Below are positions 1 through 10,560 of a stretch of 64,000 nt of DNA, piece after piece (within the stretch, counting starts at the first letter, position 1; the number at the start of each line of letters is the position of its first letter). The DNA is from Mytilus trossulus (taxonomy: Eukaryota): positions 1,426,001-1,490,000 of the forward strand of contig NC_086374.1 in the NCBI RefSeq assembly GCF_036588685.1, written 5' to 3'. Both the position numbers and the translations under genes were made by a program. The notes beneath the pieces are model-generated. The model was not told the origin of the DNA. It saw only the letters and a list, made by a program, of their open reading frames with translations, and made no database searches.

Positions 1-1321
1 TAGAATCACCTGAATATTTATCAGGGTCTTCTTTTGATGAGTACAGATTTTCGTAGAAATTTCTCTCTTCGTTTAGAATTTTTTCTTGTGACAATATTTC
101 AATGTCGTTTACAACTAATTTGTTAATACATTTATTTTTATAATTACGTTTTTCTAATGATAAGAAATATTTTGAATTTCTTTCATTGCCTTCGCAGTGC
201 TCGGCATGTGATCGTATAATAGCCCCTCTTGTTTGATTATTTACTATTTGCTCTAAATCTTCTTTAACAATATCTAATTCAATTAAAAGTGTATTTATAT
301 CTTTATCTAAATATGTACGAGAGAGATTTTTCTGAATTTCGTCTAGTCGTTTTTTTAAACTGGACTCTCTTTCCCGCAATTTCATGTTTTTATATTTGGA
401 ATATTTGACGGTTGCGCCCCTTATTTCACTTTTAATGGTATCCCATTTTAAATTTTTATTTTCTAAATTTTGATATTTATCATCACATTCTGATAAAGTA
501 TTTTTGACTATATCCACATAATCTTTGTCTGTCAATAAACCCGAGTTGAATTTCCAGAAACCGGGACCTCTCTCACTAAAGTTTTCGCCTGACAATGTCA
601 ACTTGATAAGACTATGATCAGATTTTATAGACGGAACAATGGATGTTTTTGTAACACTGCTTGACAAAAAATTCGATATCAACCAAAAATCTAAACGACA
701 TTGTATAAGCGGGGTTCTTTGACGCCAAGTATATAATCTAGAGTCAACATTTTTTGTCCTCCAAATATCACATAAGTCAAATTCTTCTATAAAATCTTCT
801 AATTTACTCGTATATTTGACAGGTGTGTTATATTTTGAACCACCCATTTTGTCTAAAGATGGATTTAGTATCGTATTAAAATCTCCACCCAAAACGAGAT
901 TTTGTTCTAACTTTTCATTTAATAAAATCTTTAATTTTTCAATATATTCAATTTGGTCATTTTCAAAGTTTTTGGTCGGTGCATAATAATTCACAAAAAC
1001 AAAATCTGTGTTATCAATTTCAACAGTTAGAATGAGATACCTTCCGTTTTCATCTGCAATTTTTTCCTTTAATATATAATCTGTTGAGCCATTAAACAAA
1101 ATAGCAACACCTTTAGAGTTCGTTTCCCCGTGCGAAAAATAAATATCTCCACCCCATTCCCTTTTCCATAAAGTTTCATACGATTCAGTACTGTGTGTTT
1201 CTTGCAAGAAAATGATGTCGCTTTGAAATTTTTTTAACCAAAGAAACATGGATTTGCGTTTAAAATCGTTTCCAAAGCCATTTACATTAAGAGAAGTTAA
1301 ATTGATACAATAATTAGCCAT
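1..1321 (-). CDS. LINE (L1/Tx1 clade) ORF2, N-terminal ~440 aa: APE endonuclease plus linker; runs off the left edge
   Basis: Not in the ORF track because no stop falls inside the window. ATG at 1321 reads MANYCINLTSLNVNGFGNDFKRKSMFLWLKKFQSDIIFLQETH...WGGDIYFSHGETNSKGVAILF, then LGGDFN, RLDFWLIS, SDHS, GPGFWKFN and IIRSHAEHCEGNERNSKYFLSLEKR. Frame checked at several points. Confidence 0.93.
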   Translation of the reverse strand, partial: MANYCINLTSLNVNGFGNDFKRKSMFLWLKKFQSDIIFLQETHSTESYETLWKREWGGDIYFSHGETNSKGVAILFNGSTDYILKEKIADENGRYLILTVEIDNTDFVFVNYYAPTKNFENDQIEYIEKLKILLNEKLEQNLVLGGDFNTILNPSLDKMGGSKYNTPVKYTSKLEDFIEEFDLCDIWRTKNVDSRLYTWRQRTPLIQCRLDFWLISNFLSSSVTKTSIVPSIKSDHSLIKLTLSGENFSERGPGFWKFNSGLLTDKDYVDIVKNTLSECDDKYQNLENKNLKWDTIKSEIRGATVKYSKYKNMKLRERESSLKKRLDEIQKNLSRTYLDKDINTLLIELDIVKEDLEQIVNNQTRGAIIRSHAEHCEGNERNSKYFLSLEKRNYKNKCINKLVVNDIEILSQEKILNEERNFYENLYSSKEDPDKYSGDS

Positions 1322-1832
1322 TTTCTAGTTTTGGCTTTACAGTCTTATTATTTTCATATGTGATACACTTAACGTAGTTGAACATTATATAACTAAGTAG
1401 AAACAAAATACAGAAAAACATATCAAATATACAATACAATACAAAAAGAGAGAGAATTCTCTCTGTTCGGTCTGCCTGACCTAAACCATATAATTAATGT
1501 TAATGTTTGTTATATTCATTGTTCATTCTCAATAAAACGCATGTAACTTTCATTCATTAATAAAAACAAAACACTATAGGTTTACCTGTTACGGTTTAAA
1601 GTACATGTAACTTTCATTCATACATAACAACATTACAATTTACAACCTTTACTATAAATGACCCAATTACAGATTGAAATACACGTGCACAGGTACACAG
1701 ACATTCTTGTTGATAATTTTGTTTACCTTTTCTTGCCGACGTACGAATATGGGACACAGTTATATAATGGCAAATATGTATTTTGATAGAACTGTGGATT
1801 GCATTGCATATCACTGGATTCATGTTTTTGCA

Positions 1833-1857
1833 TATATATATATATATATATATATAT
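1833..1857. repeat. (TA)n microsatellite in the LINE inter-ORF spacer
   Basis: Pure AT dinucleotide run. Confidence 0.9.
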
Positions 1858-2570
1858 CGGATAGTTTTTTAAGATTTGCATTGGGTGCAAAACGTATAAA
1901 AAATGTTTAATATATACATTTTTGTTCGCCAACATTGCTGGGGATCGAAAGGATATTCGCACTTTACAAAAAAGGAAAAGAGAATTCATTTTATAGAATA
2001 CCAGTATATTGGATTATTCTAACGTGTGTATGTGCAATTTATGTAAATATAGTGTCAACAACAACAAAAAAGTGGGATTTTTTTTTCTCCCGGGATTATA
2101 GTTATACACAGGGAAGATGATTACTTTTATGATGTCTGCGTGCCGGTACCGTGAGTAAATTTTGTTATATAAAATTACAATATACGCTGCATGTATTTTA
2201 TTGACTTATTTTAATTCATGGTGAAATTATTTCGGATAAAGTTGTATGTAAATTTAAAATTCATAAAAAGTAGTTTCATCTACAGATTACCTATTAAGGT
2301 AATTCATTTGAAATTTGCTTCTTTATAACTCACTGGAACAATGAATACTCTTTTTAAAAATAAAATAGAGAATTGAAACTCTTAAGATACTTTGAAAATA
2401 GTAAACATATAGGATTTGAAAAGAGAATACATGAAACTAAATATATAATATCTAACAAATTTTAAACCTGAAAGAAGAAAAAAAAATTACATTCAGCATA
2501 CTTCACTGCATGTTTATTGTCTATCAAGATGAGTTCAAACAACAGTAAATTAGTTTAAAGTTTTTATTGT

Positions 2571-3878
2571 TTACATTTTGCGGAGAACCGATTTTACTCC
2601 CTCCAAGATAATATTGTTTTTTCTTGAACCTATCTTTGCTGTACCAGATGGAGGTGTACGTGAGGAAATGATAGTTATGTTGTGTGCATCTATTTCTTTT
2701 AAATAGTCAAGTATCCTTGATCCAATTCCGTAGTCTCTGTCGTCATCGTACCCGTCGTGTGTATGTCCGTCTTTGTCTGTAAACCGATATACCAATGTGT
2801 TGTATGTACATGCAGATACTGGGCCCTGCATTATTTGTCGGGCAGCTTCACGAACTTCTGCGTATGTTGTGGTGACAGCAGCTGTGACACAATAAGTATG
2901 ACCATTGTCACTAACTTCATTAGAACTAGTTTGCTCAAATGTACCAAATTTAGACTTGTTACTGGCATCAAAAATAGCTAAAGCTTTTGGTGTTGACACT
3001 TTTTCCACATATTTAGATCCACTTTTGATGAAGAATAAACTGTTTCCTTTAATTTTAGTGCCCACATCTACTTCTTTGTACTCCTTTTGTTTTTGTACTA
3101 GTCTTTTTCTGTTTTCACGCATATCGTCTGGAAACTGTGGAGATCTGTATATGCCATTTAGTAACTCTTTGTTTTGTTTGCCTATTGTTCGTGCAGTGTT
3201 TATGACATGCTCCCGGTCATTGTAGTCATGGAATTTAACAACTATAGGACGGGTGCTGTTTTTATTTGTCTGGGTCCCTATTCTGTGGGCTCGGTCAATT
3301 TTAATATTTTCAGTTATTTTCAAAACATTTTTGAAAATCAATTTTAATTCCGCTATTACGTTTTCGTCATTTCGTTCATGAACCCCTATTACTATAGCAT
3401 TTTCCCTCATGCTGCGTTCAACCAGGTTTGCTATTTGACTTTGTTGACAATCAAGTCTAGTTTCTAAATGTACCACGTATGACTTCATTAGATTTAATTC
3501 CGTTGTCAGTTTTGTATTTTGATTTCTGACTTCGGCTATCATAGTTGTTTGGTCTTCAGTTTCTGTTGCCACAGCTTGAAGTCTGTCTTCAATGCCATCT
3601 TTGGAGTATATGTCATTTTTAATACCATGTATTTCTTCATTTTGGTTTTCAAATTTTATTATAAGACTGTTTAATGTTTGTTGTATGCCTACTATGCCAC
3701 TTAGAAGTTTGTTATTAAATGTTTGATCCTCAGAGTATTCACCGAGGTTTTGTTCGAGTGAGCTCTCTGTCTCCGTCATGTTAGTATCCGCCATTTTTAT
3801 ACCTGTGGTTTGTTTACTATTAAAAGTTTTTGTCTCTATTTCTCTTTCACGTTTACGAGTATTTTGTTTTTCACTCAT
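2571..3878 (-). CDS. LINE ORF1p: coiled coil + L1-type RRM/CTD + C-terminal IMPACT/YigZ (UPF0029)-like domain; likely start is the ATG at 3794 (MADTN)
   Basis: 435-aa ORF with a heptad-rich N-terminal half and L1 ORF1 motifs (RENAIVIGVHE, IDRAHRIG, RPIVVKF, PQFPDDMRENRKRL). The last ~115 aa have an IMPACT-like pattern (TYNTLVYRF..DDDRDYGIGSRILDYL..NITIISSR). Confidence 0.88.
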   Translation of the reverse strand: MSEKQNTRKREREIETKTFNSKQTTGIKMADTNMTETESSLEQNLGEYSEDQTFNNKLLSGIVGIQQTLNSLIIKFENQNEEIHGIKNDIYSKDGIEDRLQAVATETEDQTTMIAEVRNQNTKLTTELNLMKSYVVHLETRLDCQQSQIANLVERSMRENAIVIGVHERNDENVIAELKLIFKNVLKITENIKIDRAHRIGTQTNKNSTRPIVVKFHDYNDREHVINTARTIGKQNKELLNGIYRSPQFPDDMRENRKRLVQKQKEYKEVDVGTKIKGNSLFFIKSGSKYVEKVSTPKALAIFDASNKSKFGTFEQTSSNEVSDNGHTYCVTAAVTTTYAEVREAARQIMQGPVSACTYNTLVYRFTDKDGHTHDGYDDDRDYGIGSRILDYLKEIDAHNITIISSRTPPSGTAKIGSRKNNIILEGVKSVLRKM

Positions 3879-4602
3879 TACCTTTATTCATTACTATCAA
3901 AGTAAGTTTGTTATGTGTTGGTTTCAGAAAAATTCACTGTTTCACCATGTTTAAGTTGAAATTATCAGGCAGGTCGAGCAGAGAGAAAAAAACCTCAACC
4001 ATTCATTTCCAAGGGCAGATAATTATTCATATAAAAGTTTATTGAAATCCCGATAAGTATGATAACCTTGTTTTTTCATTATGTATGGATTCTTTTCTCT
4101 TGTTTCATGTCACAGCTGGATATACATTTCATTATTGAAGACTTCTTTTTATATAGCCGATACGAACTAGTTTGATCTGGGTAATGTACAAGATATATGT
4201 CATTGATTGTCTGGTCGTTTGGGTTAGTCACGATCAACGTTCCACCCATGTCAAAAGTACACGTCTTTAATTTCAATCAACAAATCATATTTACAATCTG
4301 CTTTAAATCTGGACTTGGATAAGTAGTTAATTTTCCATCTCTTGAGCACTTCTGTTTTTACTGTTATTAATAGATATATTGGTTCTGTTACACTCCTGTC
4401 ACATGTTATAAAGGCTATAGTTGAGCATTCGAACACAGGTTTAGCCACACTACATTTAACTATAATTCAGTGGTTATTGTTCGTCATAAATCAGAAAGTG
4501 TTTTCTTTTTAATATTTTTTTAATTTAGATTTTTTTATTGGTTCACATTTTGTCAGGTGGTCTTCTTTTGTAGCTGTATTTGTTATAGTTGATGGTCGTA
4601 CG

Positions 4603-7704: not shown

Positions 7705-7920
7705 TGTCGGTGATTTAGAGACAGTTTAACTTACGCGTCAAACGTTAACACTACTTTTAACGCCGTTTTCCATTCACATTGTTAACGTCATCATTATCTT
7801 CTGTTAACGTTGTGCTATTGTTATGTATCATGTTGCTATATAGAGTTGAGATTATACGATCAAACGAACCAGACGTTGTTTTACTGCCTGTCTAGACTTT
7901 TAGTTAACCCATCCGTCACA
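7705..7920 (+). repeat. BEL/Pao 5' LTR
   Basis: TGTCGG...CGTCACA; matches 14392-14607. Confidence 0.97.
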
Positions 7921-10155
7921 TTGGTGCTGCGACCAGAGGATATAATGACGAAAAAGAAAGCCATTCGAGTGGGCCATCGAGGAGCCGCGAGGAGATTAAT
8001 TTCAAAGATTGAAGAGGAATTAGAGAAAGAAACAACACAACGCGACGAAATAGAAAGCCTATGTGAAACCTTGAAGAAAAAGAGGGATATTCTTTCGGAA
8101 CTTGATAATGAAATATTAGAGGAGATTGCAGAGGAAAACATGAAAGCAGAGATAGAAGACTCAGATCGGTATGTTTTAGATATAGAACGGATTTTGACAA
8201 AAGTACGCAATTCATCAAGTTCAAAACAGAAAAATAAATCAAATGAAACTAGCTCTAATCAGAACTTAAATCCAAATGCAGCAGATTTTGTTTTCATCAA
8301 CTCCACATCTACATGTAATACTCCACATCCCATGCAGAATAATGATATGCAATACAGATCGTCAATGAGCGCAACAAATTCTAGCATCTACCACAAGCTA
8401 CCAAAATTGAATTTACCATATTTAATGGCAATTTGTTAAACTGGCAACCTTTCTGGGATGCGTATCAATCAACAATACACGATAACCAAACATTAACAGA
8501 CGTGCAGAAATTTACGTATTTGCAAAATCATATTCAGGGAATAGCCGCGCAATGTATCGCCGGTTTACCACTCACAAGTGCAAATTACTATCAAGCCGTT
8601 TCAATACTGAGAGAGAGGTTTGGTCAGAACCACAAAATCACGAACGCATATATTCAGAATTTAATTGATTTACCCGCACCGAGGTCAAACGCAGACAGTT
8701 TGAGAAACTTTTCCGACAGAATTGAGTGTAGCATACGCGGATTAGAATCGTTAGGAACAAACGAGAGTACATTTGGAGCCATTCTTACGCCTATTATATA
8801 CAATAAATTGCCGTCCGACGTACGAAAAAACATAACCCGAGATCGCGGAAACGACGACTGGGACATCGAATCATTGAGAACAGCAATAAAGAGGGAAGTA
8901 TGCGTACAGGTCGCAGGACAATCTACAGGTCAAAGTAATGAAGATTTAGAAATTTTACCGACCGCTTCGTTTATTGCCGAAACATTTCCAGGAAAGAACA
9001 GGAAACAGTCACGTAAGAAATGTTTATTTTGTGAAGAATCCCATCATCCAAATACATGCAAAAACGTGAAAGATGTTGAGAAACGAATTGAAATTGTGAA
9101 GCGAAAAAAGGTATGTTTTAACTGTTTCGAAAGTCATAGAGTAGCTGAATGTAAATCAGAATTTAAATGCCGCCAGTGCGGAAAGAGACATCACACGAGT
9201 ATACATGTACAAGTACATAACACAGAACCAAAGAGCTTGACCGAAAGCCAGTATAATACACAAAAGACCGTAGCACATACTGCCGTAGAGGAAACGCCAC
9301 TAGAGCTAACCACATCATTGCATTCTACTGTTACTGCACATACAGATGTTTTACTGAAAACTGCCGTAACTCCAGTTTGGTCCGAAAATCGATCGATAAT
9401 GACAAATATTTTACTTGACGAGGGAGCACAGAATTCATTCATAACTGAAGATTTAGCTAGAAAATTAGAAATTGAGTCCACCGAAAAGATAGCACTGAAA
9501 ATATCTGGATTTGGAGGAAACGAAGGACAAGTTCGTCATCTTGATAAAGCAAACATAGCTATTGAAACAGTTGACAATCAAAGAATAGAAATTGAAGTAA
9601 TAATTGTACCGAAAATTGCCGCTCCTATTCAGACAAAATCACAAAAGGAAATCAAAGCACTGTCATACTTACGTGGTTTACGACTCGCACATCCGATATG
9701 CGCAGAAGACAAGTTTAACATATCTTTATTGATTGGCGCAGACTATTACTGGTCAATAGTTGAAGATGAAATAATAAGAGGAAATGGACCGACCGCAGTT
9801 AAGTCGAAAATTGGTTACCTCTTGTCGGGACCCGTACTTACTAAGAACGGAAGTACTTCAAAACAGTCAGCAATGCTGAATATTTTGACTGATCACAGAG
9901 CCGTTGTTTGCGACTTGGAAAAGTTTTGGAACTTAGAAGCGTTGGGGGTTTCAGGAAGCGATACCATTAAAAGTCAGTCTGAAGTTGTACGAGAATACGG
10001 AGAAAAGTCTATAATACTAGAAAATGGAAAGTACACAGCTAAGTTACCATGGAAACCAGATTTCCTTCCGCTGCCGCATAACTTGGAATTGGTTAAACAG
10101 AGGACAGGAAGCGTTATTAGACGTCTAGCAAACAAACCTGATTTATTAAAAATAT

Positions 10156-10560
10156 GTACCAATTATCAGGTTGTCTGCATGTTAATATCGTAAAATATCA
10201 GCTGCGAGACATAATATTAAGCTTTTTGTCGAGTAAGCGCAGCGAACGAGATCAAAAAGCCTTCATATTATTTCGAGCAGCTGATATTTTACAATATTAA
10301 TATGCCGATAACCTAATAATCGATTTATCGGGCTGCATTTGCGTCTTTTGGAAGTATTGTCTTAGTTTCATCAGCAACCGGAAGTTGACTTGATAAGTTC
10401 GGGGCAAACTTATCAACGTCGGTTCAAACATTATGACGTCGCTGATATGCCCGGGTCAAAGTTATTAAGGCCAGGTCAACGTATTTGACGTCACAAAGCC
10501 GTGATATGGAGTTTTATTAAGAGCTGAGCAGATTGATATAGACAGTTGGACGACCGATAA
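10156..10560. mobile_element. 405-bp non-autonomous hairpin-bearing element nested in BEL pol
   Basis: Removing it restores KPDLLKI-Y-GDIIREQERRHFIEKV. Long imperfect inverted repeat 10162-10320 centred on GCGCAGC; no obvious TSD. Confidence 0.85.

Follow-up and report, generated by a model that had tools for sequence, protein, structure and literature searches.

A diverged IMPACT-type ancient domain at the C-terminus of the ORF1 protein of a Mytilus L1-superfamily LINE

The window analysed here, a 64,000-nucleotide stretch of Mytilus trossulus DNA (G000:C2:1426001-1490000; contig NC_086374.1), contains near its start, on the minus strand, the 5' part of a long interspersed nuclear element (LINE) of the L1 superfamily. 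Open reading frame 1 (ORF1) is followed by a long spacer and by the beginning of ORF2, which continues beyond the window. The ORF1 protein (ORF1p) ends in a segment, encoded at 2574-2924 (-), that is related to the ancient domain (UPF0029; Pfam PF01205) shared by the translation regulator IMPACT, yeast-type Yih1 and bacterial YigZ. The overall best explanation of this segment is that it is the C-terminal, IMPACT-derived domain of the ORF1p of a young Mytilus L1-superfamily LINE, a reading whose probability is put at roughly 80%. An earlier, sequence-only reading of this DNA had described an in-frame C-terminal extension of ORF1, and the frame is indeed open from 2571 to 3878 (-), with the last ~117 residues as that account quoted them.

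The part of ORF1p that precedes the extension has the coiled coil, RRM and CTD of a normal L1-type protein, which had also been proposed. In the AlphaFold2 (AF2) model, the chains of the human L1 ORF1p trimer (2ykp, 2yko) align to residues 113-295 with Z scores of 11.4-12.3, and the RRM aligns to 2w7a with a Z score of 12.7. A family profile matches 2ykp (E 9e-5) and also 2ldy and 2w7a, all at E ~1e-4. The cut-off of PF02994, the Pfam family of L1 ORF1p, is passed by the relative P0014 and is not reached by the window protein itself. Protein searches retrieve near-identical proteins from M. edulis and M. galloprovincialis. By homology, ORF1p presumably forms a homotrimer that binds its own RNA. 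Neither the window protein nor any of the fusions examined matches the RWD domain (PF05773), whose absence the sequence-only reading had noted. With an L1-type ORF1p as its N-terminal part and no RWD domain, the protein does not qualify as an IMPACT orthologue.

Identification of the extension depends on its relatives. PF01205 matches residues 329-408 of the window ORF1p at E 1e-4 with 22.8 bits, under the Pfam gathering cut-off of 27 bits, and the Mytilus-type relatives P0007 (22.9 bits) and P0008 (26.0 bits) also stay below it. Canonical relatives, in which the signature motifs of IMPACT are intact, score far above it: P0014 86, P0015 88, P0016 102, the ORF1 of L029 97 and P0097 72 bits. The Pfam match that the earlier account had called for is thus missing at threshold for the window protein and present for its canonical relatives. 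By phmmer, the PDB entry that matches best is 6bqi, an IMPACT homolog (E 0.14), and a profile of three Mytilus-type sequences alone reaches E 0.08 against the same structure. Taken alone, the single-sequence match of the window tail to PF01205 or 6bqi is marginal, and it takes the canonical intermediates to connect the Mytilus clade with IMPACT at the sequence level.

With those intermediates, the connection becomes strong. A hidden Markov model (HMM) of the C-termini of canonical LINE ORF1s, built from 10 related LINE ORF1 proteins with canonical domains and no Mytilus-type sequence, matches residues 319-434 of the window protein over its full length (42 bits, E 2.6e-12). By BLASTP, the oyster protein P0097 is 34% identical to the Mytilus domain (E 2e-17), and in a joint alignment the Mytilus tail lines up motif for motif with the tails of P0014, P0015 and P0016. 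Because the sub-threshold window domain is linked to canonical relatives by both the HMM and BLASTP, it is a family member by descent that has diverged too far for the curated cut-off.

Structure prediction leads to the same assignment. The main AF2 model, computed from a 63-sequence alignment that included canonical sequences, has a mean predicted local distance difference test score (pLDDT) of 86, with values above 90 throughout the domain. In this model, Thermus TT1547 (2cve) aligns to residues 314-435 with a Z score of 14.9 and a root-mean-square deviation (rmsd) of 2.3 A over 111 residues, as do E. coli YigZ (1vi7) with a Z score of 14.6 and yeast-type Yih1 (6bqi) with one of 10.2. Because canonical sequences were present in the input alignment, a control model was computed from nothing but the three Mytilus-type sequences. 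Its overall quality is low (pLDDT 58), but it keeps the order of secondary-structure elements unchanged and has Yih1, 2cve and L1 ORF1p as its top Foldseek matches, with 1vi7 YigZ further down the list. The window domain therefore has the fold of the YigZ/IMPACT N-domain in all three structural alignments, with the control model in agreement, and the AlphaFold and Foldseek comparison suggested earlier for the tail gives matches to YigZ-family structures at Z 14.6-14.9. Collectively, the HMM, BLASTP and structural results confirm residues 319-435 of ORF1p as a diverged UPF0029/IMPACT ancient domain and bear out the proposed fusion of an L1-type coiled coil-RRM-CTD protein to an IMPACT-type domain. 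The layout of the element and of its ORF1p is given in the table.

Table 1. Features of the LINE in and beside the window (positions are those of the window unless a genomic coordinate is given).
Feature	Position	Strand	Description
ORF1	2571..3878	-	intact; 435 aa plus stop codon; read from the open frame
ORF1p aa 1-54	3717..3878	-	disordered, poorly conserved N-terminus; pLDDT <50; identity to P0007/P0008 31-43%
ORF1p aa 55-156	3411..3716	-	one long helix in the AF2 model, taken as coiled coil; C-terminal part aligns to human L1 ORF1p trimer chains 2ykp, 2yko
ORF1p aa 157-235	3174..3410	-	L1-type RRM; structural alignment to 2w7a, Z 12.7, rmsd 2.5 A over 89 residues
ORF1p aa 236-298	2985..3173	-	L1-type CTD; alignment to 2ykp, 2yko, 2ldy extends to model residues 294-295
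ORF1p aa 299-318	2925..2984	-	variable linker; 30-40% identity to P0007/P0008 vs 63-79% in folded domains
ORF1p aa 319-435	2574..2924	-	diverged UPF0029/IMPACT ancient domain; Pfam, BLASTP, lineage HMM, signature-residue and structure comparisons
5' untranslated region (UTR), 5' end of element	3879..4032	-	copies begin sharing sequence at 4022-4032 (blastn, 5 full-length copies)
Upstream copy of target-site duplication (TSD)	about 4032-4045		just outside the element
ORF1-ORF2 spacer	1322..2570	-	1.25 kb, non-coding, present in all copies; (AT)13 at 1832-1857
ORF2 start	1..1321	-	ATG 1321-1319; 1262-codon open frame runs past the window start to G000:C2:1423539
3' UTR, poly(A) tail, second TSD copy	near C2:1423296		beyond the window start

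The fusion extends well beyond this copy. Searches with P0016 in ENA, JGI and Logan assemblies recovered more than 50 clusters of ORF1 joined to a canonical UPF0029 domain, and 65 distinct fusions were counted once metagenome loci had been added. Members of known origin are molluscs, mostly oysters, and those with a species name all come from oysters (Crassostrea/Magallana, Saccostrea, Ostrea). Two ESM Atlas clusters, with 57 and 242 members, are eukaryotic and mostly from Mollusca. A 5.8-kb metagenome contig, L029, carries a complete element with a 376-aa ORF1 bearing a 97-bit UPF0029 domain, a spacer of ~700 bp and a 1233-aa APE-RT ORF2 that is collinear with the Mytilus ORF2 and 37% identical to it. 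The worry that the fusion might exist only in the copy first noticed is thereby removed, as it marks a whole LINE lineage whose members of known origin belong to molluscs.

Several members of this lineage are already public under names that conceal their nature. Labels such as 'protein IMPACT homolog', 'IMPACT-like' and 'IMPACT-like protein' are borne by the oyster gene models P0097, P0138-P0144, P0151, P0159, P0163 and P0168 (K1QFM4_MAGGI among them), which join a LINE ORF1p to UPF0029 and lack an RWD domain. Genes so named, possibly these models, appear as candidates or as differentially expressed in oyster studies (PMC5989259, PMC12564202). Dozens of oyster models with the names 'protein IMPACT homolog' and 'IMPACT-like' are actually LINE ORF1 proteins.

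Both profile scores and phylogeny favour a eukaryotic source for the domain. The HMM of LINE-borne domains gives animal IMPACT proteins 100-119 bits and E. coli YigZ 16 bits, and the family profile gives Yih1 78 bits versus 18 for bacterial 2cve and 11 for 1vi7. A maximum-likelihood tree was built from 96 domains over 126 columns, with an E. coli root on a very long branch and with the two unjoined exons of the Mytilus host IMPACT left out. All 69 LINE-borne domains, the Mytilus clade included, form one clade in this tree with a support of 100/99 and in 100% of the bootstrap trees; eukaryotic IMPACT falls outside it but beside it, and bacterial YigZ is far away. The place of that clade among eukaryotic IMPACTs is not settled by a tree of 126 columns. 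Because all LINE-borne domains fall in one clade, a single capture is indicated. On these sequence comparisons, the simplest reading is one capture of the ancient-domain exon or exons from a eukaryotic IMPACT gene, probably that of an animal, followed by co-evolution with the LINE. The capture would have taken place in the ancestor of a LINE lineage now found in oysters, mussels and many metagenome contigs, with ORF1 and ORF2 evolving together with the domain ever since. The earlier suggestion that a LINE had captured a translation-regulator domain is thus sustained, with eukaryotic IMPACT favoured over bacterial YigZ.

A bacterial origin from YigZ was considered separately and is rejected by the HMM score of 16 bits, the profile scores of 18 and 11 bits and the placement in the tree. 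The mussel also retains an IMPACT gene of its own at G000:C6:71213981-71214843, in two exons (L026, L027) that match PF01205 with 35.5 and 43 bits. A whole-genome search with PF01205 returned only these two host exons, with no LINE copies and no LINE bearing a canonical domain.

The element itself is ~6.7 kb long, with a 5' UTR of ~145 nt, ORF1, a 1.25-kb spacer, ORF2, a 3' UTR of ~240 nt and a poly(A) tail. ORF2 contains APE (PF03372), RT (PF00078) and zf-RVT (PF13966) domains, and its match to human L1 ORF2p has an E value of 1e-99 and covers residues 4-880. Seventeen loci in the genome carry the C-terminal domain, which is 100% identical in five of them, and eight share a fully open ORF1 frame of 438 codons. 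Over ~6.7 kb, the window copy and four others that were retrieved together with long flanking sequence have 98.9-99.4% identity. These copies sit on different chromosomes, and each has an ORF2, a poly(A) tail and a TSD of its own; their flanks are not shared, and the TSD measures ~13 bp at the window copy and 9 bp or more beside the A-tail at L022. An ORF2 with APE, RT and zinc-binding domains, together with dispersed copies carrying poly(A) tails and TSDs, places the element in the L1 superfamily. Five full-length copies, eight intact ORF1s and 17 loci uphold the description of an apparently intact, multi-copy LINE family, and on sequence evidence the element is a low-copy, very young and probably active one.

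These features also bear on the idea that the frame is no transposon protein at all, being instead a domesticated ORF1-IMPACT fusion gene of the host, a mis-assembled model or a chance similarity. The label 'protein IMPACT homolog' given by NCBI to the oyster relatives would suit a host gene, as would the low copy number of 17 loci. Against it stand the complete, dispersed copies with their separate TSDs, and chance is excluded by the homology statistics and the fold match, so that this explanation is extremely improbable.

Contigs from a gut metatranscriptome that may contain DNA cover ORF1 up to the 5' end of the element at 4022. No splice joints across the spacer are seen in the RNA reads, which are too sparse to show the strand, start or level of the transcript. 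The spacer itself (1322-2570, minus strand) has no long ORF and is 98-99% conserved among copies.

The most distinctive property of the Mytilus domain is the remodelling of its conserved loops. Signature columns were defined as the 24 positions conserved at ≥85% in both canonical LINE-borne domains and IMPACT. Canonical LINE-borne versions retain all IMPACT signature motifs, and the window protein keeps 10 of the 24 columns and replaces 14, with changes that include S327H, F329Y, H332T, H359Y, Y362L, A363V, G381R, E382D, W408T and F421N. The loop motifs S-x-F...H, H-N-x-Y-A-Y-R, D-D-G-E and R-W-x-G...G..R-F are accordingly not found in the window domain, which has lost both histidines, the Gly-Glu of DDGE, the Trp of the RW motif and others. 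The sequence-only reading had noted that some conserved residues differ, and the count of 14 agrees with this. The replaced residues are identical across all three Mytilus-type sequences, which are 64-68% identical overall, and the stem of the Mytilus clade measures ~3.9 substitutions per site.

Such losses raise the question of whether the domain is a functionless relic, a decaying tail on an otherwise functional Mytilus ORF1p that had been useful or neutral when the fusion arose in an ancestor. The 14 lost signature residues, the long stem and the sub-threshold Pfam score would fit decay. The pattern of constraint does not: the domain is 67-75% identical to P0007/P0008, comparable to the coiled coil, RRM and CTD (63-79%) and far above the N-terminus and linker (30-43%). 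The ratio of nonsynonymous to synonymous substitution rates (dN/dS), another check suggested at the outset, is 0.31 and 0.21 for the domain against two diverged genomic fragments, values that are biased upward because these comparisons include dead copies. The substitutions are moreover fixed in all three sequences, the fold is predicted with confidence, and no subfamily with a truncated ORF1 is seen among the 17 loci. Decay is therefore very unlikely, and the sequence data indicate that the fold of the Mytilus domain is kept under purifying selection.

Another possibility is that the domain serves as an extra nucleic-acid-binding or chaperone module through which the ORF1p trimer would gain further contacts with RNA or DNA. 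It directly follows the RNA-binding RRM and CTD, and the Mytilus-type domain is mildly basic, with a median isoelectric point (pI) of about 9.1. A structural paper on YigZ is said to have suggested nucleic-acid binding. Canonical LINE-borne domains, however, have a median pI of 7.0 and a net charge of 0; they are thus neutral, and host IMPACT domains exceed them in basicity, so that the charge comparison lends no support to a specialisation for RNA binding. RNA binding by the ancient domain is not documented in PMC4503747. The statement of the sequence-only reading that the ancient domain binds nucleic acid is thus not established, as the same paper gives its function as unknown, and the chaperone role is unlikely.

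The favoured functional reading, tentative and still less likely than not, is that the domain is a docking module for a translation-linked host partner, present three times in each ORF1p trimer. Under this proposal, the trimer coating the LINE RNA would display the domain threefold, and the domain would dock on the ribosome or on a partner of host IMPACT. Docking could retain newly made ORF1p, together with the bicistronic RNA, at the translation machinery or, alternatively, could aid the synthesis of ORF2 across spacers that are unusually long in this lineage (0.7-1.25 kb). In IMPACT and Yih1, the ancient domain has its invariant loop motifs grouped on a single face, and binding of actin, the ribosome and Cdc28 requires no more than regions that overlap the linker and this domain (PMC4503747). 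For mouse L1 ORF1p, an association with ribosomes and with PRKRA, a factor of the PKR pathway, has been described (PMC10289378). In Mytilus, the face that first bound the ligand would have been remodelled, and the partner or the binding mode has therefore probably changed. The more specific version, in which the domain is a ribosome or translation-factor dock that holds the bicistronic RNA on the translation machinery or else blunts the GCN1/GCN2 stress pathway, is rather doubtful.

Docking has to be distinguished from a decoy or modulator role, in which the domain would compete with host IMPACT for the partner of the ancient domain, or alter GCN1/GCN2-eIF2alpha signalling in some other way, and so allow translation of the LINE RNA under stress or in the germline. 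IMPACT itself uses its RWD domain to bind GCN1 and thereby inhibits GCN2. The decoy idea draws on the derivation of the domain from IMPACT, on the retention of an IMPACT gene by the host, on canonical LINE-borne domains that keep every signature residue held in common with IMPACT, and on the engagement of an eIF2alpha-kinase pathway factor by mammalian L1 ORF1p (PMC10289378). Its difficulty is that the RWD domain, which none of the fusions matches, is the part to which the binding of GCN1 and the inhibition of GCN2 have been mapped, and that the Mytilus clade has lost 14 of the 24 common signature residues. IMPACT-like blocking of GCN1 is impossible because the RWD domain is absent, direct competition for GCN1 by the LINE protein is unlikely, and a decoy role as a whole is improbable. 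To our knowledge, no catalytic activity has been described for the UPF0029 family against which the earlier suggestion of a non-catalytic domain could be judged.

Several points weigh against the interpretation of the window segment as an IMPACT-derived ORF1p domain with a function of its own. The Pfam score of the window protein lies below the curated cut-off, and, with 14 signature residues replaced, the Mytilus domain may have ceased to bind the ancestral ligand. LINE-borne domains do not exceed host IMPACT domains in basicity and show no shift to positive charge, and the function of the ancient domain in IMPACT and Yih1 is itself called unknown (PMC4503747). A canonical member is linked to an ORF2 in one contig only, L029. 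Evidence of transcription is thin, amounting to a few dozen reads from three RNA-seq runs. Finally, the element is probably of the Tx1 type, a clade name that rests on a survey of bivalve transposons in which bivalve L1-superfamily LINEs are reported as Tx1 (PMC10294476), and not on an RT tree with reference sequences.

Comparison with known systems places the element close to mammalian LINE-1 in its core and apart from it in its additions. ORF1p shares with its mammalian counterpart (2ykp, 2yko, 2ldy, 2w7a; PF02994) a coiled coil, RRM and CTD in the same order, at Z scores of 11.4-12.7, and in both elements ORF1 lies upstream of an APE-RT ORF2 and copies carry poly(A) tails and TSDs. Unlike mammalian ORF1p, the Mytilus protein continues past the CTD into a further folded domain of ~117 aa, and its ORF1-ORF2 spacer measures 1.25 kb, compared with 63 nt in human L1. 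The LINE C-terminal domain is homologous to the ancient domain of IMPACT/Yih1 and YigZ and has the same fold. It differs from IMPACT/Yih1 in lacking the RWD domain, the known GCN1-binding part, and from bacterial YigZ, a UPF0029 domain plus a C-terminal domain, in lacking the latter. It also differs from both in being encoded by a multi-copy mobile element and, in Mytilus, in the replacement of 14 of its 24 signature residues.

Accretion of host-derived domains onto ORF1p has precedents in the SGNH esterase, PHD and CCHC-knuckle add-ons (PMC3905857, PMC4120745), from which UPF0029 is distinct as another domain, one taken from a translation regulator. In the collection of papers that was searched, none links UPF0029, PF01205, the IMPACT domain or YigZ to retrotransposons or ORF1. 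The ORF1-UPF0029 fusion represents a LINE ORF1p with a new accessory domain, although its proteins are already public under misleading names. We know of no other LINE ORF1 add-on derived from a translation regulator.

The finding adds a new kind of ORF1 accessory domain that is lineage-wide, and at least one family bearing it looks currently active. It also amounts to a natural experiment in which the ancient domain has been cut from RWD and fused to an RNA-coating trimer. Nature offers two forms for study: one in oysters and metagenomes with all motifs kept, and one in Mytilus with the motifs remodelled and the fold kept. If the docking or stress reading were true, this would be a LINE with a built-in translational-control domain and would open a first way into the function of a domain that all kingdoms have conserved.

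Some further observations concern related database entries and the neighbourhood of the element. The M. edulis gene models P0003, P0011, P0012 and P0013 fuse parts of ORF1 to Exo_endo_phos_2 endonuclease, C-type lectin or kringle domains and are probably annotation chimeras that arose at LINE insertions inside or close to genes or other elements. P0022, a 362-aa L1-type ORF1-like protein, is filed under a bacterial metagenome-assembled genome (MAG) of Candidatus Thiodiazotropha sp. Candidatus Thiodiazotropha is a bivalve symbiont, and the entry is probably host DNA binned into that MAG. Elsewhere in the window, at 7810-10193 (+), two adjoining ORFs encode 209 and 586 aa, and the larger contains DUF1759 (119 bits) and the putative peptidase DUF1758; this content suggests the gag-protease part of a BEL/Pao-type long terminal repeat (LTR) retrotransposon.

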